Of a DNA stretch of 64,000 bases, positions 1 through 60,124 are shown piece after piece. The position numbers and the translations under genes were made by a program. The first letter of the stretch is position 1. Every line of letters begins with the position of its first letter. The stretch covers positions 124,001 through 188,000 of IMG/VR virus record IMGVR_UViG_3300032294_002797; one strand, given 5' to 3'. A model generated the notes under the pieces. The model saw nothing but the letters and a program-made list of their open reading frames with translations, ran no database searches and was not told the DNA's origin.

Positions 1-344
1 TGATAATAGTCGATAGACTCTTGCCCATTTTTTTTATCTATATAGTGGTTAGATACTGTTTTTCCATCTCTAATTGCCTCCAAGCACCCAGGCCTTAATA
101 TGCTGATCAAAGCAGATAGATGTTCTATATTTCGAGGCTTTAGTTTTTTAGCCATAGACCGTCCAAGCCTAGACTCCAATTGAAAGCATCCTTTAGTATT
201 GCCGTCAGATATTAGGTCCCAGGTTTTAGAACAGTCTAGATTTAAACTATGTCTAATTGGATCAAACTCCACCAATAACTGGTTGTTTTCTGATGGAATA
301 ATATCGAATGAGCATCCACAATCGTAATTAAAAGTTTTAGGCAT
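1..344 (-). CDS. dnaE: DNA polymerase III alpha subunit, second (fingers/C-terminal) part; partial, runs off the window start; absent from the ORF track
   Basis: Manual translation from ATG at 344: MPKTFNYDCGCSFDII...WDLISDGNTKGCFQLESRLGRSMAKKLKPRNIEHLSALISILRPGCLEAIRDGK... This matches the DnaE pattern TxGVFQLES...LKP..FEDL.A..AL.RPG. The start overlaps the stop of the upstream exonuclease (ATGCCTAA). Confidence 0.9.
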   Translation of the reverse strand, partial: MPKTFNYDCGCSFDIIPSENNQLLVEFDPIRHSLNLDCSKTWDLISDGNTKGCFQLESRLGRSMAKKLKPRNIEHLSALISILRPGCLEAIRDGKTVSNHYIDKKNGQESIDYY

Positions 345-1044
345 GTTTATTTGACGACGATACAAATGAATCTTTGAACTTAACCTTTTGAGATACATTA
401 CGATGAAGTTTTAGAAATCTCATCAGTATCTCTGCACAGTCCTTAACATCTTTAAGAGCATCATGAGCACCTTTTTTATCTATGCCTAGATAATCTCTAA
501 GATTATCCATAGAATAGCTTTTAAGATCGTTATTTTGTTCAAACCAATAAAATACTAAGTTCATAATATCTATAACATCTCTTTGAAAGAAAATATTGCT
601 ATTACCTTCTTTATTGGTATCCCCATATTTCTGACTTAATCTATCAATAATTTTTAGATCAAAGCGATTAATATTGTATCCAGCTGGTAGCGGCGCAGAA
701 AATTGATTTTTCTTAGAACTTCTACTATGGTATTTTGTTAAATATTCTGTAAACATTTTCCAGGATTGTTCTTGAGGAGGATACTTGAGCCATTCGTCCA
801 GTACTTCTTTTTTGGAAGAACCCTTAACTTTGGCATGAAAATCCAAGATATCAGTTTCATATACATACTCAGGATTTTTTTCCAAAACTTCGGGCTTGAA
901 GTAAATATTAAATTCTGAATCTGGAATAATCTCTAGAGATATTGGATCAATTATCACCGAGGCTATCTGAACAGGACTACATTGAGTAGGATCGGAGCCG
1001 TCCGTCTCAAAATCAAAGACACATATTTTATTGTAGTTTATCAT
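337..1044 (-). CDS. DEDDh 3'-5' exonuclease (DnaQ/epsilon-like)
   Basis: ExoI VFDFETDG, ExoII AGYNINRFD, ExoIII AHDALKD. Confidence 0.9.
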   Translation of the reverse strand: MINYNKICVFDFETDGSDPTQCSPVQIASVIIDPISLEIIPDSEFNIYFKPEVLEKNPEYVYETDILDFHAKVKGSSKKEVLDEWLKYPPQEQSWKMFTEYLTKYHSRSSKKNQFSAPLPAGYNINRFDLKIIDRLSQKYGDTNKEGNSNIFFQRDVIDIMNLVFYWFEQNNDLKSYSMDNLRDYLGIDKKGAHDALKDVKDCAEILMRFLKLHRNVSQKVKFKDSFVSSSNKHA

Positions 1045-1226
1045 GAGTTATTAGATTGAATTACTTCCACCTCTGTAATGGGCACAACTTGTATCTTTTC
1101 TCCCGTAGCAACAGACTGAGCATTAAATACTTTGCAGCAACTCAATCTTTCGTCTGGTATTCTCAGGTATTCTTGTTGATTGTATAAAAATTTATCACCA
1201 TTTTTTAAATCTGCCATTCTTGTCAT
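1041..1226 (-). CDS. Small hypothetical beta-barrel-like protein, probable paralogue of 60840..61085
   Basis: 61 aa; GGGAGAATAAAATG RBS and tight coupling to both neighbours; LKNGDKFLY...ATG...TEVE pattern. Confidence 0.65.
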   Translation of the reverse strand: MTRMADLKNGDKFLYNQQEYLRIPDERLSCCKVFNAQSVATGEKIQVVPITEVEVIQSNNS

Positions 1227-1227
1227 T

Positions 1228-3102
1228 TTATTCTCCCTTTTTTAAAATATCTTGTATAGTCATAATTTTATCTAACATAGCAACTCCCAATATGTCAAAC
1301 TTTATTATACCCAAAGATTCTAAATCTTGCATCTCCATACCGGCTATCGTTTGCTCATTTTTTACATCGTACACCATAGGACATATATCTTTTAAAGCAT
1401 GGGAGCTGATGGCTATGCCGGCGGCATGCTTGGATTGATTAGATTTCGTGCCCTCTAATCTTATAGCCTGTTCGAACCTTTTGGCAAGTGGTCCTTGTAA
1501 TTGTTGATTCTCATCTAAATAGCACCAATCTTTTAATTTATCTCCATTATTTTCTAATGCCCAGCGTATAATAGACGCTTCTCCCGTTTCTTCTTTCATT
1601 TCTTGTAGATCGTCAGCTATTTTAGCTTCATCTGGTATGTGCTTGGTGATATTGTTCATTTCATCGAAAGAAATATTACCATAAACACGCAATACATCTT
1701 TCAAGGCTCCTCTTCCTTTGATTGTATTAAACGTAATCATCTGAGAAACTTTATCATGTCCATATTTCTTTTTAATATATTCGATAATATTTTCTCTTTG
1801 ATTGATAGGAACATCAACATCTATATCTGGCATAGAGATATGTTCTGCAGTATTTCTACCAGCATTATAAAATCTATCAAACATTAGATTATACTTAATT
1901 GGATCTATATTGGTAATACCTATTAAATAGGAGACCAAACAACCAGCAGCACTTCCTCTGCCCGGCCCGGGAAGCCAGTTATTGCTTCTTACATAGTTCA
2001 CTATATCCTGCACTATTAGAAAATAGCTAGATAGGTCAGCACCTTGTAGAACTTCTAGTTCGTATTTGATTCTATCTACATATGCGCCATGTTGTTCTTT
2101 ATCTACTAGTGGAACTATTTTTTCTTTCCATCCTTTTCTACACAACTCTCTGAGATATTCTGCATCATCATAACCCTGAGGACAAGAGAACGGAGGTAAA
2201 TTAGGCTTGCTCAAGATATTGTATTCTTCACATAAAGAATCTATATAATTCGTATTCTCTATTTCTTCTTCGGTATGAAGGGTTCGTATTTCATCTTGTG
2301 ATAGTATATGAAAATTATCAGATAGGAAAAAGGCTGATAAACCTATATCCTCGGAATTTGATAATTTTTTATTGATCTCTGGAAATGTTGTTTTTAAATT
2401 ATTGCATAATAGGATTCTTTGATCTACCGCATCTTCTTTTCTACAATAATGGGCATCTGGTGTGCAGACCACTTTGGTATTTGTAATCTTAGATAATTCC
2501 CTAATACACTCCGTCAAATGTACTTGAATAGTCAAATTATGCTTATCCATCAATTGACTTTCCAAGAAAACATTTTCCTTACCAAATACATCTTGCAACT
2601 TATGTATATTTTGAGATCCAATATTTTTCCAGTCGGATATGATTTTATCACTATCTATCAATTTATCAGACAAAACAGAGCCTAAGTGTCCGCATATAGC
2701 TATCAGATTGCCATTAACTAAATGCCCTAATCTATCAAGATCTAGCCTAGGTCTGTGGTAATATAGGTCTGGCTTGTTTGATTCTGACACTATCTGTATC
2801 AAGTTTTTCCATCCATCATAGTTTTTTGCTAATACTAAAAGATGGCTTAATTTTTTATTCGATTTGTCCTGTATGGCAGCATCTTGTGACGAAATGTATA
2901 ATTCACAGCCCAAAATCGGCTTGATGCCATTTCGTCTCATTTCTGTATAAAATTTAATAGCGCCAGCTATATTACCATGATCGGTAAGAGCACAGGATTT
3001 GGCACCTATCTCCAAACAGCGAGAAGCGATCTGAGACGGTTTGGATAGTCCATCCAATAGGCTGTACATTGAATGCACATGGAGAGGAATGTATTTCTTC
3101 AT
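1228..3102 (-). CDS. dnaE: DNA polymerase III alpha subunit, N-terminal part (PHP + palm/thumb)
   Basis: PHP motifs HVHSMYSLLDG, TDHGN, GCE, DAHY; GPGRGSAAG; catalytic MPDIDVD and KFDILG; ends about 18 aa after the third Asp. Confidence 0.95.
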   Translation of the reverse strand: MKKYIPLHVHSMYSLLDGLSKPSQIASRCLEIGAKSCALTDHGNIAGAIKFYTEMRRNGIKPILGCELYISSQDAAIQDKSNKKLSHLLVLAKNYDGWKNLIQIVSESNKPDLYYHRPRLDLDRLGHLVNGNLIAICGHLGSVLSDKLIDSDKIISDWKNIGSQNIHKLQDVFGKENVFLESQLMDKHNLTIQVHLTECIRELSKITNTKVVCTPDAHYCRKEDAVDQRILLCNNLKTTFPEINKKLSNSEDIGLSAFFLSDNFHILSQDEIRTLHTEEEIENTNYIDSLCEEYNILSKPNLPPFSCPQGYDDAEYLRELCRKGWKEKIVPLVDKEQHGAYVDRIKYELEVLQGADLSSYFLIVQDIVNYVRSNNWLPGPGRGSAAGCLVSYLIGITNIDPIKYNLMFDRFYNAGRNTAEHISMPDIDVDVPINQRENIIEYIKKKYGHDKVSQMITFNTIKGRGALKDVLRVYGNISFDEMNNITKHIPDEAKIADDLQEMKEETGEASIIRWALENNGDKLKDWCYLDENQQLQGPLAKRFEQAIRLEGTKSNQSKHAAGIAISSHALKDICPMVYDVKNEQTIAGMEMQDLESLGIIKFDILGVAMLDKIMTIQDILKKGE

Positions 3103-4145
3103 TATTCGGCAGAACCGGGCGCTTTGTATTGACCGATATTATAGCCTTCGCGCTGGTATGTGTCAATGGCATATTCCATTCCGTGTAAGTCTATTTCATG
3201 TTTTATTTGTTCACACTGTGTCATATGTTTGTCAATCGGAGTAACTTGCTTCGATCTGTATTCTATGATCGGTAAATGCTCACTATTCTCGAATGTATTT
3301 TTACCAAAATGACATAATTTAGTGCATTTCCAACTTTTATTGAGTTGTGGATTTGTAGTATTTCTGATACTATCAAATTTATTTTTTAGCATCATTTCTA
3401 CTTGATGAAGATGAGAGTCGTCAAAACAAACAGAAAACATTCCGCCATCATTTATAAAATTAATAGATACAATCACATGCTTAATAGCAGGATACAACTG
3501 CTTAATGGCATAATAATATAACATTAATTGAGCGTCTCTATGTAATTTATCTAGAGTTTTTTCCTCTCCGGTTGCCCAATCTAATCTTTTCCCTGTTTTC
3601 CAGTCGATCACTTCTAGTGTATCGTCGTTAACTTTGGTAATAAGATCGATAGTTCCTTTGATAGCCAAATTACCTGTGAGTCGCCCTTCTTTGGTGAGAT
3701 AGTCATATTTTGCCCAATCTTTTTTTATTTCTATATCGAAATGTTGTTCGGGTTGAACTATATCTCGTTGTCTAGGATCGAACATTCCATTATTATGTTC
3801 TAAAGCTTTATATACCCACTTATAACAATCTTTATAGTCCGTGCTAGACCATGCATGATGAGTAAATAAACTAGTATAATATTGGTAAACCTGTTCTATA
3901 ATAGTGTCTAAATTATAGTTCTTGACATCTACTTGATTAACAATATCATCATAAAAATATGGTCTGCCTTGTTGTGTACACATCTTGATTTCTGCCAAAA
4001 TTTCAAAAACCTTATGGCATATTGTGCCCTTATCTGCTTTTTTATTGGATGGCGATTTTATACCTAGGTTATATTCTATAAAATATTGCATAGGACAAAA
4101 AGAATGAGTTCCATAACTGGAACTGCGTATATATGTAACAATCAT
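3102..4145 (-). CDS. PD-(D/E)XK nuclease, Cas4/AddB-like with probable Fe-S cysteines
   Basis: N-terminal CPMQY and GTICH; KGTIDLI...EVIDWKTG; QLMLYY; C-terminal CTKLC...C. Confidence 0.85.
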   Translation of the reverse strand: MIVTYIRSSSYGTHSFCPMQYFIEYNLGIKSPSNKKADKGTICHKVFEILAEIKMCTQQGRPYFYDDIVNQVDVKNYNLDTIIEQVYQYYTSLFTHHAWSSTDYKDCYKWVYKALEHNNGMFDPRQRDIVQPEQHFDIEIKKDWAKYDYLTKEGRLTGNLAIKGTIDLITKVNDDTLEVIDWKTGKRLDWATGEEKTLDKLHRDAQLMLYYYAIKQLYPAIKHVIVSINFINDGGMFSVCFDDSHLHQVEMMLKNKFDSIRNTTNPQLNKSWKCTKLCHFGKNTFENSEHLPIIEYRSKQVTPIDKHMTQCEQIKHEIDLHGMEYAIDTYQREGYNIGQYKAPGSAE

Positions 4146-5892: not shown

Positions 5893-7333
5893 CGATAATA
5901 AATCCGTTAGAGCGGGATCCGCTGTTCTTCATTAGTTCAAGTTTGGTTTGACCTTCAGTGATCTTGGCGCACCAGCCCTTCATGTGACAATTAATATAAT
6001 CGTTGTCGTCGAGTCCGCCACCATGTCGGCTCACAAGCGGTACGAGCTTCCTATTTCCATTATCCGGACCATCTTCTGCGATTTCCTCTGGTGTTTTTCT
6101 TTTGAATATACTGAAATTGCTACACAACCATATAATTCTATCCGAGCCAGATGCGGTATCTGTGCTTTCTTTAGAGATACCATCTCTATTTAATTGAACA
6201 AAAGCAACAATAGGAATTTTATATTTACTGGCAAAATTATGCAATGATGTCATCATAAAACCAAGAACCTGGTATTCTTTTAAGTCTTGTGACATACCTT
6301 GGGTGTCCATCAATTTAAGATAATCATAAAAAATTACACAATCTTTAGCGGAGCCATCTGGATTAAGGCCAACCTCTTTGACTATCCATCGTCTCATTAT
6401 GGCTAGTTGATCCTCAAAGGGCTTGCCTGCAATAGATTTGTAATACAAAGGAGTTTGTTTAAGATCAGCCGTTGCGACCTTGATTTTTTCTAACTTGCTG
6501 GCAGACTCGGCAAATTTTCCGGTTTCTATATGGTTTATTTCCATCTCTGTCATCATAGCAATAACACGATTAACATGATCTTCCTTGGTCATTTCTGTAT
6601 CCATATTGAGCACAGGAATTTTTAGTTTATTGGCAATATAAAATCCTATATTATCAGACAACAAGGTTTTACCTGTTTTGGGTCGTGCAGCAATAACGTT
6701 TATGGTGCTTTTTCTAAGACCACCACCTATTGCATTATCATATGCAGGAAACCCTGTCGGGATACCCACTTGATCTATGGGATTATTTATGAGTTGATCT
6801 ATATATTCGTCTAAATTAGAGGCTATGCTTTCCGGTCCAGAATCAGAATCATTTAGCAACGACGAAAAATCAAAAATGGCATCCTCTGCTATGCCAAGTA
6901 TCGAACCTACACTCTCCGTTCCTGTAACATCTAAGATTTTATCCTGCGCTTTTTCTAGCTGGTTTCTTAGAAGCCTAGCGATTTCTAGCTTTCTAATTTT
7001 TGCTGCAAATTTTCTAATATTTTCACTATTGACAGGAAAATCTAGAATAGCTTTAAGGTGTTGTGTTTCTTCTTTTTTGTTAAAAAAGTGAGATAAACCC
7101 AGTTCCGAAGAAGCAGATAAAATAGTGGCAACGTCGATCTTAGGACGATGTTCTTGATCAAAAATATGTTTTAAGCATCTATAGATAATCTTATTGCTAT
7201 CTACAGTAAAAGTGCTTTCTTGTATCAGGTCGGCTATCTCTAAATAGCTTTCATCCCCATATACAGATATTCCCGCCAAAACAGCTCTCTCTGCTGCTGT
7301 ATCACAAAGTATCATCCTGGACTCCTGGCACAA
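5849..7333 (-). CDS. dnaB: Replicative DNA helicase DnaB-like (true start probably near 7315)
   Basis: AERAVLAG N-terminus; Walker A AARPKTGKT; DTEM; FYDYLKLM; FVQLNR. Confidence 0.92.
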   Translation of the reverse strand: MCQESRMILCDTAAERAVLAGISVYGDESYLEIADLIQESTFTVDSNKIIYRCLKHIFDQEHRPKIDVATILSASSELGLSHFFNKKEETQHLKAILDFPVNSENIRKFAAKIRKLEIARLLRNQLEKAQDKILDVTGTESVGSILGIAEDAIFDFSSLLNDSDSGPESIASNLDEYIDQLINNPIDQVGIPTGFPAYDNAIGGGLRKSTINVIAARPKTGKTLLSDNIGFYIANKLKIPVLNMDTEMTKEDHVNRVIAMMTEMEINHIETGKFAESASKLEKIKVATADLKQTPLYYKSIAGKPFEDQLAIMRRWIVKEVGLNPDGSAKDCVIFYDYLKLMDTQGMSQDLKEYQVLGFMMTSLHNFASKYKIPIVAFVQLNRDGISKESTDTASGSDRIIWLCSNFSIFKRKTPEEIAEDGPDNGNRKLVPLVSRHGGGLDDNDYINCHMKGWCAKITEGQTKLELMKNSGSRSNGFIIDENNEKNESEIPFE

Positions 7334-45789: not shown

Positions 45790-47045
45790 GATGGTGGTGG
45801 GTTGGGAACAAAGGTTATGGCCGTGCCGAAGCCGGTTACGTTGCAGGCAGAGCCTGTGAAGGTGGCGGTGCCGGTCACTGTGGCTTCGTTGTACGAACTG
45901 TCGTTGAAATTCGCGTCTCCGGTGACGGTGCTGGGGTTGCCGTTGTACGAACTGTCATTAAACGTCGCGTCTCCGGTGCCGCCGCTGTAGTTGTACGCGG
46001 TGTCGTTGAATGTCGCGTCTCCGGTGACGGTGCCGTCGTTGTACGAACTGTTGTTGAACGTCGCATTGCCACTGACGGTGCCGCTGTAGTAGTTGTACGC
46101 GGTGTCGTTGAACGTCGCGTTGCCGGCGACGATCAAGGTGTTGCTCGAACTGTTGTTGAACGTAGCGTTGCCAGTGACGGTGCCGTTGTTGGACGCATTA
46201 TCGTTGAACGTCGCGTCTACATTGACGGTGCTAAAGTTGCCCGAACTGTCGTTGAAATTACCGTCGCCAGATACGGTGTCGTAGTTACTCGAACTGTCGT
46301 TGAAAGTACCGTTGCCAGTGATCGTGCCGTCATTATTAGAACTTCCATTAAACGTTGCGTTGCCGTTGATAGTGCCAAAGAAGATGCTCGAATTGTCGTT
46401 AAAAGTAGCGTCTCCATTAATGGTACTGAAGTTAATAGAATTGTTGTTAAAAGTCGCATCTCCATTGACCGTACCACCATTGTTCTGCGAGTTATCATTG
46501 AAAATAGCGTTTCCATTGACCGTGGCGGTGTTGTACGAATAATCGTTGAATGTCACTTCCCCATAAGCGTAACTGAAGTTACGCGAAATATCGTTAAATG
46601 TCGGGTTGTTAGCGTCGCCTTGGTTGGACGAATAACTATTGAAAGCAGCATTACTGACGCTTCCGAAGTTTTGTGAGCTGTTGTTAAAATGCGCATCGCC
46701 AGTGATGGTGCCGACGTTGATCGAATTGTCATTGAAATTAGCGTTGCCAGTAACGGTAATGGATACGAAAAAGAAAAAGTTGCCATTAATAGTAAAGTTC
46801 ACCAGTGTCGGCTCGCTGGCACTATTGGTATTAACAGAGGCGCTCGCAATTACACTATCTATACTTCGTGGTAAATGAGTGGCAGGAACACTAAATTGAT
46901 CATCCAACCACCAATTACCCAAAGTATTCCAATCATTATCAACAGCACCATTAAAGTACAAAACCTTACTCGTTGCTACTCTTACCTTAGCAGCGCCGTT
47001 GACTATTTTGAATTTATTTCCCCCTACAGCTCGGAAAAAGCTCAT
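45780..47045 (-). CDS. Beta-helix/solenoid repeat protein (putative receptor-binding fibre)
   Basis: About 20 copies of a roughly 16-aa unit GTVTGNATFNDSSYN; N-terminal W..LGNWW. Confidence 0.85.
   Translation of the reverse strand: MSFFRAVGGNKFKIVNGAAKVRVATSKVLYFNGAVDNDWNTLGNWWLDDQFSVPATHLPRSIDSVIASASVNTNSASEPTLVNFTINGNFFFFVSITVTGNANFNDNSINVGTITGDAHFNNSSQNFGSVSNAAFNSYSSNQGDANNPTFNDISRNFSYAYGEVTFNDYSYNTATVNGNAIFNDNSQNNGGTVNGDATFNNNSINFSTINGDATFNDNSSIFFGTINGNATFNGSSNNDGTITGNGTFNDSSSNYDTVSGDGNFNDSSGNFSTVNVDATFNDNASNNGTVTGNATFNNSSSNTLIVAGNATFNDTAYNYYSGTVSGNATFNNSSYNDGTVTGDATFNDTAYNYSGGTGDATFNDSSYNGNPSTVTGDANFNDSSYNEATVTGTATFTGSACNVTGFGTAITFVPNPPPSCP
45800..46750 (-). repeat. Degenerate tandem repeat, about 48 bp period, GC-rich relative to the rest of the window
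   Basis: Recurring GTCGTTGAA and ACGGTG words on the + strand. Confidence 0.85.
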
Positions 47046-49084
47046 GGGGTACCTCCATCAACAAACTGAATAATAATATTAGCAGACCCATCAAAATTAG
47101 TGCCGTTAATAGTACGAGGAGTTTGTAGTGCTGTTGCTGTACTAGCATTACCAGTTAAGGCGCCCACAAAAGTTGTACTAGATACACTAGTTAAACCGCT
47201 CACACTAACTACCGTATCACCAAGATTAATAGCAGTTGATCCGATAGTCACACGACTATTTTCTAGTTGAGAGTTACCAACACCAGATGCTCTGATACTA
47301 ACAGCACCGCTTGTTACACTAAAGTCACCACTATCAAAACTAGCTATACCTTTGACAGTTGTACTAGCATCAGGAATTAAACCAGAAGCAACGCTGGTAA
47401 CTCGTCCATAACTATCAGTGGTTACTCCAACAACCACATTACCAGAACCACTATCAGTTCTACTAACTGTAGCAAGGTCAATATTGTCAGCATTTACAAC
47501 GATTCGACTACTACTAGCTGTTCCAACATTAAGAGTATTTCCACTCTTAACCATACCATCGCCCGCTGTAATTTGACCAGCACCGCTAAACTGAGCAAAA
47601 TTCAAAGCGGTTCCAACAATGCCGTTAATAGTAATAGGATCGTTTGTAGTTAAAACCCAACCGCTATCAGCATTGACAGTACCTTCTGTTACAAAAACAA
47701 ACATACCAGCCGTAACCTCTTCGCTACTATTTGCATCAGCAGCTCTGCTCCAAGATCCACTTGCGGCTACCCAGATACCGTTAATTCTTGGTTCTGCATG
47801 ATTTTTTACCAGTACTCTATCGCCTGCTACTAATGTGACTCCATCTATAGTTTGCAAACCGCTAACACTTAAAGAGCTATCAGCTGATGTTGTAGCAACC
47901 CTAACACTTTGCTTAACGTCTAATCCTGCTCTTGCAGCATCAACATACGCTTTTGTTGCAGCATCACTATCATCTGTTGGTGTTGCTAAATTAGTGATCT
48001 TTTGGCTATTTAACGACACACTACCTGTTGGAGCTGCCATTTGATCCAAACGAGATGTTCTTACCTGAGAGTCAAAGTTATTAATATTACTAGCAACTAA
48101 ACCACTACCTACTAAAGTAAGATTACCGCTAATGCTTGCATTATTACGAACTATTAAATTATTAGTATTAATAGTTTGCGCAGCATATACTTCTCCTAAA
48201 GAGCTAACAGAAAAAACGCCATCTCCAACATCAACAGCATTAACTCGAAGTAGACCCGTGGCGTTGATACCTGTTGCACCCAGATTCCCAATATACAATC
48301 CAGATGCCCTAACTTCTCCAACGTCTCCATAAATTACTGCTTTATTGGCAACAATAGTTTCGGGAGCGGACCCATCTAGCAAATTAAGTTCGCTAGCGCT
48401 AGAAGTCAAGTCTGTAATATCCGACACTTGAATAGTTGGATCACTTAAACTTACAATATAATTACCACCAGAGTGAGACAAACTAATACCACTACCAGCA
48501 GTTAATGGACTACTAACAGTAAGAGTATTATTTCCACTATTATATACAATATCAACACCAGATCCGGCCACAATACTAGTACTAACAGCACTATCAATCA
48601 GACTGTTAACCCCACTAGCAAAATTTGTAATATCAGACACTTGAATGGTAGGATCACTAAGACTAATGGTTGTATAACCAGTAGTATCATTATAACTAAC
48701 GGCAATACCACTAACGCCAGTAACCGATACCCCAATAATATCTTGTATAGTTTCACTATTAATAAGAGTATTAACAGCGCTAGCAAAATCATTAACTTGG
48801 CTAGATTGAATACCTGTTACACTAATAGTAATAGGCACTCCGGTTACAGAAGAAAATGATAATCCAATACCACTAGCTCCTATTAAGTCTGTATTACTAG
48901 GTAATATGGATGAGTATGCTAAACTATTCCATGGAGTTAGTCCATCTCCAATTTTATATCTTTTTGTGGTGGTATCTAGTCCCCATTCACCGGCGCTTAA
49001 TGTAGGATTAAGTTGGCTCCAACCACTACCATTAGGAAGAGTAAGTTCTCCTCTACGCATTTGAATTCTTGTTTGAACAGCCAT
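47042..49084 (-). CDS. Tail fibre/baseplate-proximal protein with Mtd_N N-terminus
   Basis: NPTLSAGEWGLDTTTKRYKIGDG..WNSL; TPTDDSDAATKAYVD..GLDVKQSVRVATT; DRVLVKN; ends DGGTP. Confidence 0.85.
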   Translation of the reverse strand: MAVQTRIQMRRGELTLPNGSGWSQLNPTLSAGEWGLDTTTKRYKIGDGLTPWNSLAYSSILPSNTDLIGASGIGLSFSSVTGVPITISVTGIQSSQVNDFASAVNTLINSETIQDIIGVSVTGVSGIAVSYNDTTGYTTISLSDPTIQVSDITNFASGVNSLIDSAVSTSIVAGSGVDIVYNSGNNTLTVSSPLTAGSGISLSHSGGNYIVSLSDPTIQVSDITDLTSSASELNLLDGSAPETIVANKAVIYGDVGEVRASGLYIGNLGATGINATGLLRVNAVDVGDGVFSVSSLGEVYAAQTINTNNLIVRNNASISGNLTLVGSGLVASNINNFDSQVRTSRLDQMAAPTGSVSLNSQKITNLATPTDDSDAATKAYVDAARAGLDVKQSVRVATTSADSSLSVSGLQTIDGVTLVAGDRVLVKNHAEPRINGIWVAASGSWSRAADANSSEEVTAGMFVFVTEGTVNADSGWVLTTNDPITINGIVGTALNFAQFSGAGQITAGDGMVKSGNTLNVGTASSSRIVVNADNIDLATVSRTDSGSGNVVVGVTTDSYGRVTSVASGLIPDASTTVKGIASFDSGDFSVTSGAVSIRASGVGNSQLENSRVTIGSTAINLGDTVVSVSGLTSVSSTTFVGALTGNASTATALQTPRTINGTNFDGSANIIIQFVDGGTP

Positions 49085-49121
49085 GATCGGTGCCTTTCTT
49101 TGGGAAATTATTTATTTAACA

Positions 49122-49400
49122 TTATGGGGATCCACAATCAAATTCATATTCGTCTAAGTATTCATCTAAGCCTTCTATTCTAGCCACATCTAAATTACCA
49201 ACTATTTTACTCATAGGAATATTGTCTGGTAAGTCACTAACTAATATTTTTTCAGTATTAACTATTTCCAAATTAAAACTATCAAAAAGTTCAATTTCAA
49301 TATTATTAACAATACTACCAAAAGAAGTTTCAACTTCTAATATATTTGTTGTAGGCTCCAATATTTCTAAGATAAAATCACTCATATGATTTATACACAA
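49122..49400 (-). CDS. Small acidic structural protein (probable start MSDFIL)
   Basis: Ends FDCGSP, similar to the DGGTP end of the neighbour. Confidence 0.6.
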   Translation of the reverse strand: MCINHMSDFILEILEPTTNILEVETSFGSIVNNIEIELFDSFNLEIVNTEKILVSDLPDNIPMSKIVGNLDVARIEGLDEYLDEYEFDCGSP

Positions 49401-49792
49401 TTAAGAGGTTGTTGAGCTTGACTAAAGCGTTTTACTATATTAACTGTGCCAAATAATAATCGCGTGGTATATTTACCACCACCAGCATACAAATCATCAG
49501 GACTTTGTAATTCAAGATCATATTTAGCTGTATTAAAATTAAAAGAGTTTGTTGTACTTGATGGCATCATTAAGGTTAATTTGCCATTAGGATCATCTAT
49601 AGTAAACTTATAAACATTATGATCAATATTGTCACTACTAAATATTTGAGTAATATTAGTATTAGTTTTCCATATTAATCTAGCACACCACCCTGTTAAA
49701 TTTACTGGATTTCCACCATTGTCCTTATAAATTAATGATATTTTAAAAGATGTTCCTTGTTCGATAGTAAAATCGTATTTGCTAGCTGCCAT
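49391..49792 (-). CDS. Baseplate/tail Ig-like small structural protein
   Basis: IEQGTSF...PVNLTG..AR...YDLEL...RLLFGTV. Confidence 0.7.
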   Translation of the reverse strand: MAASKYDFTIEQGTSFKISLIYKDNGGNPVNLTGWCARLIWKTNTNITQIFSSDNIDHNVYKFTIDDPNGKLTLMMPSSTTNSFNFNTAKYDLELQSPDDLYAGGGKYTTRLLFGTVNIVKRFSQAQQPLNCV

Positions 49793-49837
49793 AATTTGGC
49801 CTTATTATATATAATAATACGAATGAGACAATAACTA

Positions 49838-49847
49838 TAGATACACT
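49838..49847 (-). promoter_or_regulatory. Putative promoter motif variant AGTGTATCTA
   Basis: Intergenic, about 45 nt upstream of the ATG at 49792. Confidence 0.35.
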
Positions 49848-49923
49848 AAATAGTATTAGTATTAATATGTCTGCAAACAATAGTAAAATTCAGTCGTTAC
49901 TTTTTCTTTGCTATCAAAATAAT

Positions 49924-50136
49924 TTAGCCACCAACTACTGTTTGATTGCCTACTAATTGTACAAAAATACCATTATAGAATCTGTTGTCATATTTAGCTT
50001 CAATACTACTCATAGCTGGAGTAGTTTTAACATCACGATTATATGTTTGGTATGCTCCGGTAAAAGAGGTTGATGTTACTACGGATCCATTTTTAACTGG
50101 ATTAGACGATATTGCTTTATTTATGTCATTAGCCAT
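49924..50136 (-). CDS. Small hypothetical (probably virion) protein
   Basis: 70 aa with AGG RBS. Confidence 0.55.
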   Translation of the reverse strand: MANDINKAISSNPVKNGSVVTSTSFTGAYQTYNRDVKTTPAMSSIEAKYDNRFYNGIFVQLVGNQTVVGG

Positions 50137-50145
50137 AATATTTTA

Positions 50146-50487
50146 TTACCTTTCTATTCTAGATTCTAAAGTTTCTAATGTTTTTGCTAGCATAGCTATT
50201 TGTACTTTCAGCTCATTCATAACATCACTATTTCTTTGAAGCGCAGAGGCAAAAGCCGCCTGGTTTTCTTTATTACTATTTAATCTTTCCATAATAAATT
50301 GCTTGTCATGTAAATAAGGACTTTGTGTTTCTATCATATGCAAAACTTCGGTTTTAGATGCCATATTACGTCCTATGGCTACCCAAAATCCCATCATAGT
50401 CACTATTATTCCTACGCAGGTAGTTGCTAAATTTTCCCAGAAATGAATAATAGTATCACTCATAATAAATACCTCGTGGATGATCAA
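50146..50487 (-). CDS. Membrane-anchored coiled-coil protein (probable start MSDTII at 50463)
   Basis: Transmembrane segment CVGIIVTMMGFWVAI followed by a heptad pattern; GAGGT RBS. Confidence 0.65.
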   Translation of the reverse strand: MIIHEVFIMSDTIIHFWENLATTCVGIIVTMMGFWVAIGRNMASKTEVLHMIETQSPYLHDKQFIMERLNSNKENQAAFASALQRNSDVMNELKVQIAMLAKTLETLESRIER

Positions 50488-50507
50488 TATGACAAAGCAA
50501 GAGTCTT

Positions 50508-50517
50508 TATATACACC
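50508..50517 (-). promoter_or_regulatory. Putative phage promoter motif GGTGTATATA
   Basis: Intergenic, directly downstream of a terminator hairpin. Confidence 0.55.
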
Positions 50518-50523
50518 TTATAC

Positions 50524-50551
50524 AAAAAGAACCAGGACAACGCCTGGTTCT
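50524..50551 (-). terminator. Rho-independent terminator
   Basis: Perfect 9-bp stem AGAACCAGG-CGTTGT-CCTGGTTCT followed by TTTT on the minus strand, about 30 nt after the stop at 50584. Confidence 0.8.
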
Positions 50552-50583
50552 CTATGTATACTCGATAGTAGTAAAACACTATA

Positions 50584-51168
50584 TTAGGTAGTTTTCCCAG
50601 AATACCCTACGGATACCGGAGTTTTGCTGCCTAGCTTGTAGGTCAAATCACCAGGAGCCGTTCTGGTTACACTAGCAGCAACATCTGTAGAAGTTGTTGA
50701 TGTACCGGTAGTGGCGCCCCAAAAATTATCTACTGCTGTAGTAGGAGGTGTAGTATATTGGCCAGTATATATGTTCCAGTATCCAGCCCTATATGCAGTA
50801 GTAAATCTGGTGCTTCTGACTTTTTCTTGGCGATGAATACTACGACGAGAAGCTAGGTCAGATGCACCACCCTTAAGAAAAGAATTGCTAACTGTACCAG
50901 CTAATACTGAAGTATATTTGATACTAATAGGTTTTTGATTATTATTAGCAAAAACACCACCACTTAATGCCGGATCGGCGTAGTCACTATTGGCATTAGA
51001 AATTACTTTAGAGCCAAAAACGCCCAGGTCTTTTGTGCCAAGAGCGTTGTTCTGTAATACCGAAGACTTTGAACCCGCATTAGTTGCTACTCCGCGATTA
51101 TTACGGGTAGATGATTTGGTTGTCGCTGACGAACCGTCTGTTTGTACTGTAGCCATTTTAGTCTCCAT
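50584..51168 (-). CDS. S/T/G-rich hypothetical (probably virion) protein
   Basis: 194 aa; has its own terminator. Confidence 0.6.
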   Translation of the reverse strand: METKMATVQTDGSSATTKSSTRNNRGVATNAGSKSSVLQNNALGTKDLGVFGSKVISNANSDYADPALSGGVFANNNQKPISIKYTSVLAGTVSNSFLKGGASDLASRRSIHRQEKVRSTRFTTAYRAGYWNIYTGQYTTPPTTAVDNFWGATTGTSTTSTDVAASVTRTAPGDLTYKLGSKTPVSVGYSGKTT

Positions 51169-51212
51169 AAAAAGTGGGATAGGTATTAATTACTTACCCC
51201 AAAATTTGCAGA

Positions 51213-51878
51213 TTAATGGTAATTTTGACTTTTTTTAGTAATTTTTTCTAAAGTATATATATTAGAGGTTTTGTATCCATAGATTTTGGTACTATTTAGT
51301 ATATTATTGATTTGATCATCAGTCCATGCACTACCATTGACTATTATATTCATATTGGTATTTTTTTGACTAATTAACATAGCAGCTAGGATATTATCAG
51401 AGATATTATCCATTAAAAAATTAGCAGATGGATAGATGGTATTAATGCCAAATTCGGTCAAAATACTAGCTGTTTTATATAGAAGTTCTGGAACAAAAAT
51501 CTTATATTCTAGCACATATCTCAAATCCACTGATGATCGCTTGCATAGTTCGGTTTGCGCCTCTAGCTCTTTTCGAAATTTATCATATTTTCTATTGCAT
51601 AGAATGTTTGATGGAGCTACCATCTCAATAATGTCAGTCCCATTTTGTATTGCATTTTCAATTAGTTTGTATCTAGAATCGCTGTCAGATAGTCCAAAAG
51701 GATAATCTAAAATGGTACTTATGGGAATTTGATTTTTTAATAGAGGTTTTATTACTTTTACATAGTAAGGAAATACAGAAATAACAGTAGGATTGTAATA
51801 AAGAGATTTACTAATATTCTCTTTTGTCTCGTTTTCATTACTAGCTATATCATAGTAGCCATATTCTATAATATTCAT
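51213..51878 (-). CDS. DeoC-like TIM-barrel protein with degenerate active site
   Basis: STILDYPFG...AIQNGTDIIEMV...LRYVLEY resembles DeoC; the catalytic lysines appear absent. Confidence 0.7.
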   Translation of the reverse strand: MNIIEYGYYDIASNENETKENISKSLYYNPTVISVFPYYVKVIKPLLKNQIPISTILDYPFGLSDSDSRYKLIENAIQNGTDIIEMVAPSNILCNRKYDKFRKELEAQTELCKRSSVDLRYVLEYKIFVPELLYKTASILTEFGINTIYPSANFLMDNISDNILAAMLISQKNTNMNIIVNGSAWTDDQINNILNSTKIYGYKTSNIYTLEKITKKSQNYH

Positions 51879-52549
51879 TATTTAATTTTATTTTTGAGTA
51901 TATCGATATTAGGAAACTTTCTATCTCCAAGTACACCATCAGCAAACCCATACTCTACTGCTTCATTAGATTTTAAAATCCAATCACACTTATTTGCTAA
52001 TTGAGAAGTAATATGTTTTCTTGCCATCATCTTTTTCCAATTTTTATTTTTAGCCATTTCACTTTCCATGCATCTATCCGTAAAAATATCTATCATTTTA
52101 TCACACTCATCTTCGTTCCATTTTACAGAACTAACGGCGGCTTTTGAGTGTTCTCCATCCAAACTAAAAGAACCGTAGTGTATCAACATTGTAGTATTGG
52201 GCATCAAGATTCTTAAGCATGGAGATTGGAAGAGTACGCTACTAGATGATTCTACTTTGGCATAAGCTAAAATAGCAATTTTAGATTTGGAAAAACGCAC
52301 TGTATCATACATACCTAAACAATCTTGCCAGTATCCGCCGGGTAGATGCATATGTACTAGAATCGGATCGTGAGACAATGTATTGAGATATCTAATATTC
52401 TTCTCAAATAAAACAGCTGACCTATAATCAACTCCGCTTTCTTCTTCTCCATCAATATATGAATGTAGATATACTTCTCTATTTTTTAGATCTAAACCAA
52501 AATTATGAATATGGTTCAGCTCAGAGTCCGTGTTCAATGAATGATTCAT
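51878..52549 (-). CDS. clpP: ClpP-like protease
   Basis: HLPGG, MYDT, KVESSS (Ser), MLIHYG (His), CDWILKSNEAVEYGFAD (Asp). Confidence 0.85.
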   Translation of the reverse strand: MNHSLNTDSELNHIHNFGLDLKNREVYLHSYIDGEEESGVDYRSAVLFEKNIRYLNTLSHDPILVHMHLPGGYWQDCLGMYDTVRFSKSKIAILAYAKVESSSSVLFQSPCLRILMPNTTMLIHYGSFSLDGEHSKAAVSSVKWNEDECDKMIDIFTDRCMESEMAKNKNWKKMMARKHITSQLANKCDWILKSNEAVEYGFADGVLGDRKFPNIDILKNKIK

Positions 52550-53004
52550 AATAATAATCCAGATAGGTAAGAATATATTGTTTGATTGATATTAGATAGT
52601 GTATCGCTAGAGTTAAATAACTGGCCTATTCCTATGCGGAATCTATATCTTGTATACACATCTAAAACTTCCACCCCTTCATTATTCTCTATGATAGCGG
52701 CTATTTTTGGCGTTAAATCGAAATTGGTATGCCCTATCCAAAAATTAAAAGAAGACCCTATATTATATTGATCATTATATGGCATCAGACCAAATGGCGT
52801 GATAATAGCCTTAATATGTTTTTTTGCAAAGCTGTTTTCAGGCTCATCACTATGATCATTTGGATAGTGATCATCTTCGTTTATATCATCTATAAAGTCG
52901 GGAGATTTGACAAAATCTTCTGGAGATGAATATACAGACTCATCAGAAAATGGATCCTGCCACTTCTGCCAAACTATTTTAGGCGAAACTATTTTTGCAT
53001 CCAT
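52546..53004 (-). CDS. Hypothetical phage protein
   Basis: WQKWQDP...FWIGHTNFD...TRYRFRIGIG. Confidence 0.6.
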   Translation of the reverse strand: MDAKIVSPKIVWQKWQDPFSDESVYSSPEDFVKSPDFIDDINEDDHYPNDHSDEPENSFAKKHIKAIITPFGLMPYNDQYNIGSSFNFWIGHTNFDLTPKIAAIIENNEGVEVLDVYTRYRFRIGIGQLFNSSDTLSNINQTIYSYLSGLLL

Positions 53005-53011
53005 TATTGGT

Positions 53012-53437
53012 TTATGACGGTAAAAAACTTTTAAATACTTGTGATGGTCTAACTACCGGCATATTTTTCTCTGTGTTAGATTTTTGTTTTAGATAAGAAA
53101 GCTCCGTCAATTTATAATAAACATTCTGTGCAAAAAGTATATCATATGATTTATAACTTTTATAATTTTTGATAGTTGATATAATCTCTGATTCTAATAA
53201 ACCCTCATTAATAGCATCAAGCATTAAAGCATAATTATTAGATAGAGATAGTATTTGATCTTTATTATTTTCATTAAACTCTGGCCAATAGCATATTATA
53301 TTGATAGTACCATCAATATTCATTTGTATATTTAAAGAACATGCTATATTTTTATTGGTTTTTTTATTATTCTGTTGTGAAAAGTGACCGAACAAATTTT
53401 GCAGAAATTTATACATACGCCATAGCCTTCCTTGCAA
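53012..53437 (-). CDS. Hypothetical phage protein
   Basis: ORF coupled to neighbours; ends PVVRPSQVF. Confidence 0.55.
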   Translation of the reverse strand: MQGRLWRMYKFLQNLFGHFSQQNNKKTNKNIACSLNIQMNIDGTINIICYWPEFNENNKDQILSLSNNYALMLDAINEGLLESEIISTIKNYKSYKSYDILFAQNVYYKLTELSYLKQKSNTEKNMPVVRPSQVFKSFLPS

Positions 53438-53786
53438 CAGGATTTATAACTGCTAAATTCGGACTAATCAAGAAAGCGTTTTTTACTTTGGTGTCTGATG
53501 GTAGAATAGTTGTATAATTAATTTCTAATATACTTCCATTCTTTTTAACCCCCAATAAATTATAATAAGGAGTATATTTCTCTGGACTAGTAGTTATATT
53601 TTTTTCTATATGATCATATAAAAAATTAGTTAGATGATCATCTAAAGTTAGGTTGTGTGTATCTTTATCAAGATTCAAGAAAAAAGATAAAGGCATATAG
53701 TGTCCATCGGTAGATGAGACAAAATATCTATTGCTTTTATCTTTTATATAGATAGCTGCCACTAGATTACATTTAACTTCAGGCAT
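53409..53786 (-). CDS. Hypothetical phage protein
   Basis: 125 aa ORF coupled to the sigma gene. Confidence 0.5.
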   Translation of the reverse strand: MPEVKCNLVAAIYIKDKSNRYFVSSTDGHYMPLSFFLNLDKDTHNLTLDDHLTNFLYDHIEKNITTSPEKYTPYYNLLGVKKNGSILEINYTTILPSDTKVKNAFLISPNLAVINPVARKAMAYV

Positions 53787-54369
53787 ATTGTCTGATCCTG
53801 GATAGACCCTTTTGAATATTTTGTCTAATTGCTTCTCTAGTGACGCTGTATTTATTACCTATCTCTAGTAATGTCTTATTATTAAAATAATATTCATAGA
53901 TTTGATCTTTTTGCTTATCAGACAAGATATCTGAATTCAAAATACATTCTATATATTTTGCTATCATATCTTTCTCTTCTTGTTCGGATACAATTTCAAA
54001 GGGATCAGACACTCCCTTGGTCTCTATATTTGATATATAGCTACGATTTTCCTTGTTATCGGAGGCATATTGATCCAGAGAATAATTGGTATTTTTCTTT
54101 TTATAACGATTAGATAAATATGTTTTAATAGCCCATAAACCGCACTGATTACGATAAGAATACTTGGTTTTCGATTTACCATTGTATCCCGTGCGAGTCT
54201 TGTCCCATTTCCAATCTGCTATCATTATAGCTTCTGCAATTTCTGATATTGCTTCTTCATTAGATAATAATTCTTGTCTTAAATTATTGTAAAATGACGG
54301 AGCAAACTTAGAAATAATTTTTTTAGCTAAATTTATATAGGTATCCAGAGTCTCAAATTGCTGTTCCAT
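53779..54369 (-). CDS. RNA polymerase sigma70-like factor
   Basis: Region 4 HTH LSDKQKDQIYEYY...KTLLEIGNKYSVTREAIRQ; region 2-like helix. Confidence 0.8.
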   Translation of the reverse strand: MEQQFETLDTYINLAKKIISKFAPSFYNNLRQELLSNEEAISEIAEAIMIADWKWDKTRTGYNGKSKTKYSYRNQCGLWAIKTYLSNRYKKKNTNYSLDQYASDNKENRSYISNIETKGVSDPFEIVSEQEEKDMIAKYIECILNSDILSDKQKDQIYEYYFNNKTLLEIGNKYSVTREAIRQNIQKGLSRIRQYA

Positions 54370-54398
54370 TTAATGTCCTTATAAAAGTAAATTTTGGC

Positions 54399-54839
54399 TT
54401 ATTTTTTCTGAGTCTTTTTTGTCAGTTCTTCCCATTGTTTGGGATTAGGTCTATCTTTATCTCCGGGCTTGGCTGGTCTGTATTTTTTACCCTCTCTTTC
54501 TCTTTTTTTACGGATGTTTTCCCACAGACCCGGGCGAGAACTACCAGTAGATTCATCGTCACTTTCTGTGACATACATCACAAAATCATGGATGGTTCTA
54601 ACATAATCCTCAGTTATGGCAATTTTACCCTGAAGCCAGCTCTCTGTCAAGTTTTCTTTTACGTGCGGAGAGTCAATAGAATTTATTATATTATTGATAT
54701 TAGCCACCATGGCTTTTAAAGATCCTAGACTCATTTCATAGAAATCTTCTTTGTATTCTTGTAGATCATCATTAGTCGAAGACAGTACCTGATCGATATG
54801 TGATAGAATTTCATTCTTACGATTGGTCATTATTATCAC
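54399..54839 (-). CDS. Hypothetical phage protein
   Basis: C-terminal GLWENIRKKR...KPGDKDRP basic motif. Confidence 0.6.
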   Translation of the reverse strand: MIIMTNRKNEILSHIDQVLSSTNDDLQEYKEDFYEMSLGSLKAMVANINNIINSIDSPHVKENLTESWLQGKIAITEDYVRTIHDFVMYVTESDDESTGSSRPGLWENIRKKREREGKKYRPAKPGDKDRPNPKQWEELTKKTQKK

Positions 54840-55509
54840 CTTTAGTATATTGTATTAAGTCGTTAAAAAGATTTTTTACTAATAGCACTGATGCGTCATT
54901 ATCGCTAGGAAAATGAACTCCTTGCTTAACTCTAGCTAACATTACTTTGCGAGTAGCTTCTGCTAATTCATCTTTCAAATGAGGGAATTCGACAGTTAAT
55001 AGTTGTTCGGCAAGTGCCGCGTATGCTACATGACCCGAGGGATAAGCTGGCGTATGATGAGTTCCAGTGTGTATTACATCTATATTAAGATTATAGAATT
55101 CAGCTATTTGATTAGGTCTGGGTCTATTAAATAGTATTTTTAAATCAGACACAATCTCATACAATAAAGCATATAGTGTATCAAATTTGTTTTGGGGAAA
55201 AGGTAGACTATATTTTTTAAGTATCGTCTTATAAATAATTAATGGATCCTCATCTATTAAGAGAATAGTTTCTTTGATATTAAGAGGGATATTTGAAGTT
55301 TCTTTAATAAGATGCTGAATTTCTGCCTTAGTAATATCACTAGAATTACTTGGAGGACAATCTATTAGATCTATATATTTAAAAGGTAAATAAGATTCTA
55401 ATTCTGTAGGTCTACTCTTATGTATATAATTTTTATATACTAAATTATCTAAATTGGATTGTTTTTTATTAACAATAATATCTTGTATTTTTTTGATTAA
55501 ACTGAACAT
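54817..55509 (-). CDS. PAP2/vanadium haloperoxidase-family phosphatase
   Basis: KILFNRPRP, AYPSGH, ARVKQGVHFPSD. Confidence 0.88.
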   Translation of the reverse strand: MFSLIKKIQDIIVNKKQSNLDNLVYKNYIHKSRPTELESYLPFKYIDLIDCPPSNSSDITKAEIQHLIKETSNIPLNIKETILLIDEDPLIIYKTILKKYSLPFPQNKFDTLYALLYEIVSDLKILFNRPRPNQIAEFYNLNIDVIHTGTHHTPAYPSGHVAYAALAEQLLTVEFPHLKDELAEATRKVMLARVKQGVHFPSDNDASVLLVKNLFNDLIQYTKGDNNDQS

Positions 55510-55514
55510 ATTTA

Positions 55515-56075
55515 TTATACTTGTAATGTTAAAAAATTATCTATTCCCATTTGTTCTATCAATTTAAGATATCCTTCATATAGTTTAATGCCATCTTCAC
55601 TACCTTGAAGTAGCGGGATCATAGTATTGGCCGTAAGTTCGTCTCCTACGGCTCGTGCAGCAACAATAGTGGCTCGTTCTGCTGTCGATGCTTCTCTAAC
55701 TGAGGCTAGATTGTAATTAATCATTGCCACCATATCATGTCTTGTCCATCTTGGTAGAGATACATTAAGTGGCTGGTAATCAACATCAAAAAACTCTAAA
55801 CGTGTTAAGTTTATCATAGCATGTTCATGTTCTTCCAAAGCATCAGCTTTAATAATTGCTGCTAATTTTTTATAGCCCCATCTTTCAAGATGCACTGCTT
55901 GTGCCGATAATACTGTTGTTTGTTGCCAGTGAATATTAAGAGATTTTTTAAGAAGTTCTATCACCGTTTCTGTAGAATATTTTGTGACTTCTTGAGCTTG
56001 TGTGTTTTCTGATTTGTTGTCCATATTAGATATTTTGCTTTCTTGATCTTGTAATAGTTCTGATATAGGTTTCAT
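55515..56075 (-). CDS. Bacterioferritin-like ferritin-fold protein
   Basis: HLERWGYKKLA...EEHEHA...RLEFFD...E. Confidence 0.75.
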   Translation of the reverse strand: MKPISELLQDQESKISNMDNKSENTQAQEVTKYSTETVIELLKKSLNIHWQQTTVLSAQAVHLERWGYKKLAAIIKADALEEHEHAMINLTRLEFFDVDYQPLNVSLPRWTRHDMVAMINYNLASVREASTAERATIVAARAVGDELTANTMIPLLQGSEDGIKLYEGYLKLIEQMGIDNFLTLQV

Positions 56076-56079
56076 ATTA

Positions 56080-56640
56080 TCACCAAGCTTTGCATGACCA
56101 GTATCGGGCTTTATACTTAGGTCCAGGATTATCGCAGTTGTGTCGTGCTCTAAAACTTTTACGTCTTTCGGGAATATTTTTTTTAATTTTCATATTAGGA
56201 TCACCAAATCTAACTATTATAACCTTGCCTTTTTCATTTTTAACATAAACCGCAGATTTTTTAGGTCCATCAGGAGTTCTGAAAGGTTTATTAAGAGTTA
56301 CTTTCCGTCCTTGATATTCTGATGCTATCAGATGAGAAATATCATATTCTTCTATTTCTTCACCAAAGTCAATATAGTCTTCTTCTTTAGGAATCAATAG
56401 ATTTGATAATGTAAGAAGTTCTTCTGGATCATCACAATCCTCACAATCATAGGCTAGGCTGAAACCTAATATCTCCATGACCTGATCAATCAAACTACTC
56501 TTAGATTTTTTGGTTTGACCCAAACATACGGACACTCTTTGTTTGGTGTCTTTATAGTCTTTTTTCATTGTTTCGTCACTCATGCAACGACTAACAAATT
56601 TTTGACTATCTTCATCTTTTCTTGGCTTTGGAATTGGCAT
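56080..56640 (-). CDS. Conserved-looking large-phage hypothetical protein
   Basis: MPIPKP..E....FVSRCM; VRFGDPNM...RRKSFRARHNC...ARYWSC. Confidence 0.65.
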   Translation of the reverse strand: MPIPKPRKDEDSQKFVSRCMSDETMKKDYKDTKQRVSVCLGQTKKSKSSLIDQVMEILGFSLAYDCEDCDDPEELLTLSNLLIPKEEDYIDFGEEIEEYDISHLIASEYQGRKVTLNKPFRTPDGPKKSAVYVKNEKGKVIIVRFGDPNMKIKKNIPERRKSFRARHNCDNPGPKYKARYWSCKAW

Positions 56641-56661
56641 AGAGTATCTCCTAGATAAATA

Positions 56662-56671
56662 TTAATACACC
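56662..56671 (-). promoter_or_regulatory. Putative phage promoter motif GGTGTATTAA
   Basis: Intergenic, about 21 nt upstream of the ATG at 56640. Confidence 0.5.
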
Positions 56672-56694
56672 AATAAAATAACTGAATTTGACCA

Positions 56695-57765: not shown

Positions 57766-57771
57766 AGTAAC

Positions 57772-58896: not shown

Positions 58897-58902
58897 ATAA
58901 TA

Positions 58903-59382: not shown

Positions 59383-59392
59383 TATGACTTCC

Positions 59393-59926: not shown

Positions 59927-59932
59927 GAAATA

Positions 59933-60124
59933 TTATTTTCCTAAGAAAAAATCTATCACTGATCTATCTGAATTCTTTACAGTTTTAAAATTTGGAGAAT
60001 ATAATTTTACTAAGCCGTCTATAAAACCACATATGATCATTAACAAAAAAGCAAAATAAAGCATATTTTTATTTCGAAGAGATAGGATTGTAAATAAATA
60101 CAGGAATGTCATTCCATATGTCAT
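59933..60124 (-). CDS. Small membrane protein (probable start MLYFAF)
   Basis: Hydrophobic LYFAFLLMIICGFIDGLV. Confidence 0.45.
   Translation of the reverse strand: MTYGMTFLYLFTILSLRNKNMLYFAFLLMIICGFIDGLVKLYSPNFKTVKNSDRSVIDFFLGK

Follow-up and report, generated by a model that had tools for sequence, protein, structure and literature searches.

A phage C-family DNA polymerase encoded by two genes on either side of a DEDDh exonuclease gene, and probably working as two chains

The window analyzed here is a stretch of 64,000 nucleotides, corresponding to bases 124001-188000 of one 223,302-bp virus record (IMGVR_UViG_3300032294_002797) from a large uncultured freshwater phage. At its left end, the C-family polymerase (DnaE) of this phage was found to be encoded in two separate genes, dnaE-N and dnaE-C, with a gene for a small protein of 61 residues (s61) and a gene for a DEDDh 3'-5' exonuclease lying between them. 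Based on domain content, conservation and selection, we consider it likely that this polymerase consists of two polypeptides that assemble without being covalently joined. Of the A, B and C families of polymerases, the genome yielded the split DnaE alone, which stands beside a phage DnaB, primase and single-stranded DNA-binding protein (SSB); neither an A- or B-family polymerase nor a second DnaE was detected in the record, which is estimated to be 100% complete.

The gene dnaE-N (1228..3102, minus strand; 624 residues) encodes the part of a C-family polymerase that comprises the PHP domain, the palm and the thumb. Comparison with Pfam placed the PHP domain at residues 7-183 (PF02811, 4.6e-36), and the palm/thumb model was matched over its complete length (PF07733, positions 1-260 of 260, 5.6e-73). 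The catalytic aspartates were located at D426 and D428 (motif PDIDVD) and at D603 (motif KFDILG), the counterparts of D401, D403 and D555 in Escherichia coli, and all three were invariant across 32 sequences. The first-pass annotation, made from the letters of the window, had already described the PHP domain and the three Asp motifs, which hold, and had placed the end of the gene about 18 residues after the last Asp, where the distance from D603 is in fact 21 residues. It had also regarded the PHP metal ligands as intact, and indeed the nine ligand positions were all occupied (H8, H10, D17, H42, E67, H87, H139, D216 and H218) and invariant or nearly so in relatives, with H139 at the position of a Cys in Taq and M. 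tuberculosis. According to published surveys, an intact PHP site is compatible with epsilon binding (PMC3919608), and the conserved ligands make it possible that there are two editing sites, one in the PHP domain and one in the DEDDh exonuclease.

The remainder of the polymerase is encoded by dnaE-C, which starts at an ATG at position 344, where its homologues also begin; a longer open reading frame (ORF) of 559 residues, from an upstream ATG, overlaps this reading. The first 114 codons of dnaE-C lie in the window (1..344, minus strand) before the gene leaves it, while the complete gene in the genome encodes 541 residues (G000 122719-124344, equal to L001 8719-10344). The product carries the fingers (PF17657, 1.9e-45), with the motifs RKAIGKKK and FNKSH invariant, an OB fold (27.2 bits, cut-off 27) and a helix-hairpin-helix (HhH) region whose HHH_6 score of 23.1 bits was slightly below the cut-off of 25.6. 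The later DnaE block that the annotation had noticed in a separate ORF from 344 is thus the fingers, HhH and OB part of the enzyme.

The break between the halves could be placed with several alignments. Positions of the TIGR00594 model (length 1022) were divided into 1-573 for the N-part and 583-1022 for the C-part, and those of PRK05673 into 5-576 and 585-1052, respectively. In the alignment with Protein Data Bank structures, residue 614 of the N-part corresponded to residue 566 of E. coli alpha, so that the N-part ends at about 576, and residue 34 of dnaE-C aligned with alpha residue 589; the flanking residues in Taq were 635 and 647. The break is therefore equivalent to the loop at about residues 577-588 of E. 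coli alpha, at the palm-to-fingers junction, where the annotation had also put it. In the E. coli structure attributed to Lamers (2006), the palm is said to extend to about residue 560 and the fingers to begin at 561, limits by which the cut would fall in the loop after the first fingers helix. With the catalytic triad in the N-part and the fingers motifs in the C-part, the active site is therefore composite. Among the features by which a DnaE-type polymerase is recognized, the PHP domain, the palm with its triad and the fingers, HhH and OB modules were all found, whereas a single polypeptide was not: a stop codon follows residue 624 of dnaE-N, and this state was conserved in relatives. The C-part begins with an extension specific to split forms (residues 1 to about 24), which includes a CGC motif and was predicted to form ordered strands (predicted local distance difference test, pLDDT, 85-88). 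This extension was kept in distant split forms, and its first 22 or so residues were absent from unsplit ones.

The sequences were inspected for signs that the two halves end up in one chain. No Pfam match to an intein or Hint domain was obtained for any of the four products, and dnaE-N ends directly past a palm helix, without an N-intein of about 100 residues. The invariant C38 of dnaE-C was preceded by one of the residues D, E, N and S, and in no case by His-Asn; the segment before C38 was also present in unsplit relatives. Neither the N-intein and C-intein that characterize an intein-split gene nor a free-standing homing endonuclease between the halves was found, in line with the annotation, which had reported no intein-type ends. 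A scan of the locus against Rfam gave no match of any kind at E <= 1, introns included. Intein remnants were also considered in s61 and in the dnaE-C extension, and were ruled out by fold and motifs. Joining of the halves in a covalent manner, by trans-splicing of an intein that is degenerate or atypical (its remnants being s61 or the C-extension), by RNA splicing or by translational bypassing, is in our estimate extremely unlikely. It gains some plausibility from the frequency of inteins in this polymerase family (as in L032, P0008 and P0011, see below), and from the "fractured" dnaE loci with split inteins known from aquatic metagenomes (PMC2677866), but it has to contend with the lack of any Hint match on the N-part, s61 or the C-part, of an N-intein and of His-Asn before C38, with a separate s61 ORF that lies in another frame and folds as a KOW-like barrel, and with the roughly 880 nt, containing two selected genes, that separate the halves. 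A spliced or frameshifted messenger giving one polypeptide had been named by the annotation as the outcome that would overturn its proposal; at the DNA and protein level, to which this evidence belongs, the absence of an Rfam intron and of an intein domain, and an s61 without Hint fold, speak against it.

Inteins were nevertheless present elsewhere in the family, at other positions. An in-frame insert of about 245 residues or larger was observed between LRPG and C of the C-part in L032 (8738-11092) and P0008, while in P0011 the intein was located inside the palm motif, between GRG and SAAG. Two further sequences, P0006 and P0029, break off in an insert after SFNK.

The annotation had noted a 61-residue ORF and a DEDDh exonuclease between the halves, and both were confirmed as genes. 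The exonuclease (337..1044, minus strand; 235 residues) belongs to the RNase_T family (PF00929, 2.9e-13) and has the DEDDh residues D11, E13, D129, H194 and D199, the first three being invariant and the last two conserved in at least 90% of 37 sequences. Its C-terminal tail bears a conserved Phe-x3-Phe motif (F223, F227). It matched PHROG 192, "DNA polymerase exonuclease subunit" (1.3e-23), while its top matches were generic 3'-5' exonucleases and Exo I. The exonuclease may act as a bound polymerase subunit.

The small protein s61 (1041..1226, minus strand) is conserved, with residues F13, C30 and C31 invariant, and was predicted with high confidence (pLDDT 94.6) to form a small KOW/SH3-like beta-barrel, whose match to domain I of EF-P/eIF5A was weak (template modelling score about 0.6, E >= 0.012). 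A profile search for s61 in the distant split and the unsplit loci gave nothing significant, and an 85-residue ORF with a GCC motif in L084 resembles it by eye only; s61 is a feature of the subgroup in which the window lies. In a complex prediction of the N-part, residues 1-300 of the C-part and s61, run with paired alignments of 32 rows and without controls, the ipSAE interface score of s61 was 0.00, a value that carries no weight either way.

The four genes are closely packed on the minus strand, as are all genes at the left end of the window. Spacings of +1, -4 and -8 nt were found for the N/s61, s61/exonuclease and exonuclease/C junctions, respectively: s61 starts 1 nt past the stop of dnaE-N, with a GGGAG about 9 nt 5' of its start, the stop of s61 and the start of the exonuclease gene overlap as ATGA, and the exonuclease stop and the dnaE-C start share 8 nt. 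Intergenic distances in relatives were mostly between -14 and +10 nt.

To evaluate how widespread this arrangement is, related loci were collected from IMG/VR, yielding 80 loci with protein identities of 66-82%. The order nuclease, dnaE-N, s61, exonuclease, dnaE-C and SSB was found in every locus long enough to display it, and the four genes were complete in 48 loci, in the same order in 48/48. The annotation had proposed a survey of gene order in related phages, and this is its result. These 48 independent loci, together with contigs from three samples (X1-X3) that carry the same, unexcised arrangement, exclude the assembly artefact that the annotation had also allowed for. On a wider scale, an exhaustive profile-free search provided 150 representatives of the nearest clusters, defined at 50% identity and 38-71% identical, and in 141 of the 150 dnaE-N ends at the split point. 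Ratios of nonsynonymous to synonymous substitution (dN/dS) were 0.02-0.09 for the N-part, the exonuclease and the C-part, and 0.11-0.23 for s61; most synonymous sites were saturated. No cultured relative was found: the best tblastn matches reached identities of only about 34% for the N-part, 31% for the C-part and 26% for the terminase.

These results bear on a further reading, according to which the polymerase is broken and non-functional and host enzymes replicate the phage. Unsplit relatives in the same synteny, and a genome in which no phage clamp was found, could be expected in such a case; however, both halves are under strong purifying selection, with synonymous sites saturated, the catalytic residues and fingers motifs are invariant and the PHP ligands invariant or nearly so, the split is shared by 141 of the 150 clusters, and this is the sole polymerase of a 223-kb genome with its own helicase, primase and SSB. 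A broken enzyme is accordingly regarded as exceedingly improbable. Decay, which the annotation had listed against itself, is excluded by the dN/dS values of the halves and the exonuclease and by the sole-polymerase status in a genome estimated to be complete.

In three groups of relatives, a different peculiarity was observed in dnaE-N. The frame was interrupted just past the first PHP motif (L015 at about 5950-6010, L017, L058-L061 at about 3830-3900, L064 and L068), in such a way that a leader of 14 codons ending in PLHVHS is followed by TAG or TAA and the coding sequence resumes in the -1 frame. In these loci, 11 or 14 nt stand in place of a single ATG codon of the window; the inserts have a length of 2 modulo 3, a stop at their start and a His codon at their end, before Tyr. 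At the protein level the leader was conserved, and the differences in it were synonymous. The interruption could be explained by a programmed -1 frameshift, by a short translational hop or by an N-part without two of the PHP ligands.

Five deep-branching split relatives (L084, L085, L091, L092 and L093) were examined. The exonuclease was found between the N- and C-parts in L084, L085, L091 and L092, and the contig of L093 stops past a uracil-DNA glycosylase (UDG) gene without reaching an exonuclease or a C-part. Since it was present in every locus readable throughout, the exonuclease can be taken as the constant feature between the halves. The accompanying genes varied among these loci and comprised a UDG gene or as many as nine small ORFs, with none in L092. 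A UDG gene follows dnaE-N in L085 (7926-8474), L091 (8253-8822) and L093 (8410-8967), between the halves in the first two; none was found in the genome of the window. In L048 (8769-9784) and L049 (8590-9605), two extra ORFs of 146 and 192 residues were located between the exonuclease and dnaE-C, which indicates that additional genes can be accommodated between the halves.

Contiguous forms of the polymerase accounted for six of the 150 representatives (P0009, P0016 and P0067 among them), and two of them contain an intein or are truncated by the end of a contig. They occupy the same replication module, but their exonuclease gene has another place, which is immediately upstream in L090, some 1 kb upstream in L089 and some 4 kb downstream in L088. 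The annotation had considered that relatives with a contiguous dnaE would point to decay in the window; such relatives do exist, but the split form is the prevailing, conserved state, found in 141 of 150 clusters. In the tree of the N-part, the six contiguous forms were placed as two trios among split forms, and the best trees require two changes. Several independent splits or re-fusions would give these two changes, yet no claim is made for them because the approximately unbiased (AU) test did not reject a tree in which the contiguous forms are kept together (p = 0.21). One ancient origin of the split is thus not rejected by the sequences.

The position of unsplit forms at two places of the best N-part tree is also what a precise loss of the intervening cassette could give. 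In a further reading, the cassette would be excised from the DNA during infection, restoring a contiguous dnaE in the way of developmentally excised elements. Around the cassette, flanking direct repeats were limited to chance-level matches of 10-20 nt, no recombinase was found nearby, and no contig skipping the cassette appeared in four sequencing runs; the sole joint reported was a 264-nt, low-depth contig of a relative. In addition, the cassette carries a conserved exonuclease, and a single origin of the split is compatible with the AU test. The probability left for excision is close to negligible.

Another reading is that the halves have diverged towards separate jobs, with the N-part acting, for example, as a PHP exonuclease or phosphatase and the C-part as a DNA-binding factor. 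The PHP site is intact and the C-part has HhH and OB modules for DNA binding, as this would require, but the invariant palm triad of one part and the fingers motifs of the other make sense only if both act together, and the two genes were always adjacent and co-oriented. We therefore hold separate functions to be very unlikely.

Assembly into one two-chain polymerase is the reading that we favor, and it could operate as follows. The genes dnaE-N, s61, exo and dnaE-C would form one tightly packed unit, in which ribosomes probably re-initiate at each junction, so that the products would be made together. The N-part would supply the PHP domain, the thumb and the palm with the three catalytic Asp, and the C-part the fingers motifs that bind dNTPs, along with HhH and OB fold; with the active site divided between them, neither half would polymerize alone. 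The native palm-fingers interface is where the halves are expected to meet, with the break in a surface loop (about 577-588 in E. coli alpha), and the beta-hairpin extension of about 24 residues, seen in split C-parts only, may help in docking. The DEDDh exonuclease is probably an accessory proofreader that docks by its conserved, Phe-containing C-terminal tail, and a second editing activity may come from the PHP domain, whose metal site is intact. The data establish how the genes are built, where the break lies, that intein and intron signatures are absent, that the arrangement is conserved under purifying selection and that the genome has no other such polymerase; physical assembly of the N- and C-parts, co-translation of the four products, binding of the exonuclease as a subunit, activity of the PHP site and any role of s61 are inferred.

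Several observations weigh against this proposal. The evidence for assembly is indirect, and the complex prediction scored the interface of s61 only and not the contacts between the N- and C-parts. A sliding clamp (PF00712) was not found in the genome. One split subclade (L039, L042, L045 and L051) has no dnaE-C extension, and for this reason the extension cannot be essential. Finally, the exonuclease scored 22.3 bits against the epsilon equivalog NF004964, whose cut-off is 236; because it is so far under the cut-offs, it is likened here to epsilon in its working and not filed in that family.

A more elaborate version, in which the split is a functional design, was judged unlikely. The split would then be more than a tolerated scar: the gap would be a slot for the docking and expression of fidelity factors that can be exchanged (in every case the exonuclease, with UDG, s61 or others depending on the lineage), and the CGC motif and C38 of dnaE-C would act with the invariant Cys-Cys of s61 as a metal or disulfide staple, locking the N-part, the C-part and the accessory proteins into a modular replicase.

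Split replication enzymes are known from other phages. In the T4-related Aeromonas phages 25 and 44RR, the two parts of the PolB-type polymerase gp43, 43A and 43B, purify together and show activity (PMC2988022), and in the split NrdA of Aeh1 the tails created at the break are essential (PMC3045599). As in these cases, an essential phage replication enzyme is cut here by inserted DNA without intein or intron, the gene is contiguous in some relatives (six) and split at an identical junction in 141 clusters, and a novel tail is present on the split C-part. The present case differs in that the enzyme is a C-family DnaE and not PolB or ribonucleotide reductase, that the inserts are a DEDDh exonuclease and small ORFs (UDG elsewhere) instead of homing endonucleases, and that the split is old, spanning a whole diverse clade.

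For DnaE itself, trans-splicing inteins are known in cyanobacteria, and "fractured" dnaE loci, which combine a split intein with a free-standing endonuclease gene between the halves, have been reported in aquatic metagenomes (PMC2677866). The locus analyzed here shares with the latter two adjacent DnaE genes with a gene between them, but unlike intein-split DnaE it has neither intein halves nor a homing endonuclease, its break point is another one, and its product would be of two chains. The combination of a DnaE polymerase with a separate DEDDh exonuclease and a small third protein recalls the Pol III core of E. coli (alpha, epsilon and theta), in which alpha, however, is one chain; the phage exonuclease, moreover, is far below the epsilon cut-offs. 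Theta of E. coli is helical, whereas s61 is predicted to be a beta-barrel. PHP ligands are intact here and degenerate in proteobacterial alpha (PMC3919608). In PolC of Firmicutes, a DEDDh proofreader is likewise nested in a C-family polymerase, yet there it is fused within the PHP of one polypeptide, while here it is a separate gene at the palm/fingers junction. In a literature that was mostly open-access, no intein-less split C-family polymerase, and no fidelity genes nested between polymerase halves, were found. A two-chain, intein-less C-family polymerase with nested accessory genes would therefore appear to be new within the known theme of split phage genes.

C-family polymerases are the replicases of bacteria and targets of antibiotics. 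To our knowledge, they have been treated as single chains of about 130 kDa, save for the intein-spliced forms of cyanobacteria. A natural, ancient and widespread two-chain DnaE would indicate that palm and fingers are separable and that the break point is permissive, and would offer a system from nature in which assembly of the active site can be studied. It may also be relevant to the division of proofreading between a PHP site and a DEDDh exonuclease, whose mutual exclusivity has been raised as a question (PMC3919608), and with it the theme of genes split by insertion and rescued by assembly would reach a third class of enzymes and a large clade of uncultured phages.

Regarding the surroundings of the polymerase genes, a conserved replication module lies 5' of dnaE-N on the minus strand and consists, in order, of DnaB helicase, a DnaG-like primase, a dNMP kinase and a PD-(D/E)XK nuclease. 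The last of these (Cas4-like, 347 residues; 3102..4145, minus strand) is directly upstream of dnaE-N, and an SSB gene and then glycosyltransferase genes follow 3' of dnaE-C. A complete match to the sigma-70 consensus (12/12; TTGACA, 17 nt, TATAAT) was found at 3138..3166 on the minus strand, 36 nt 5' of the dnaE-N start. By its consensus match alone, this candidate promoter may drive the four-gene unit; it is treated as a lead only, because it lies inside coding sequence, in the last part of the nuclease gene, and is conserved only in part among relatives.

Elsewhere in the window, the GC skew was uniformly negative, consistent with nearly all genes being on the minus strand, and no tRNA genes were detected in its 64 kb. 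The sole GC-rich patch (46001-48000; 0.43 versus about 0.34) coincides with an ORF of 680 residues (47042-49084, minus strand) that matched Mtd_N, the N-terminal domain of the major tropism determinant, weakly (4.6e-6). A reverse transcriptase was not detected in the genome, and there is thus no sign of a diversity-generating retroelement. Outside the window, the terminase, portal and capsid were only remotely like those of known phages, and the structural region included giant ORFs of 4690, 5391 and 2772 residues (G000 47946-62018, 75495-91670 and 104609-112927, respectively, plus strand).

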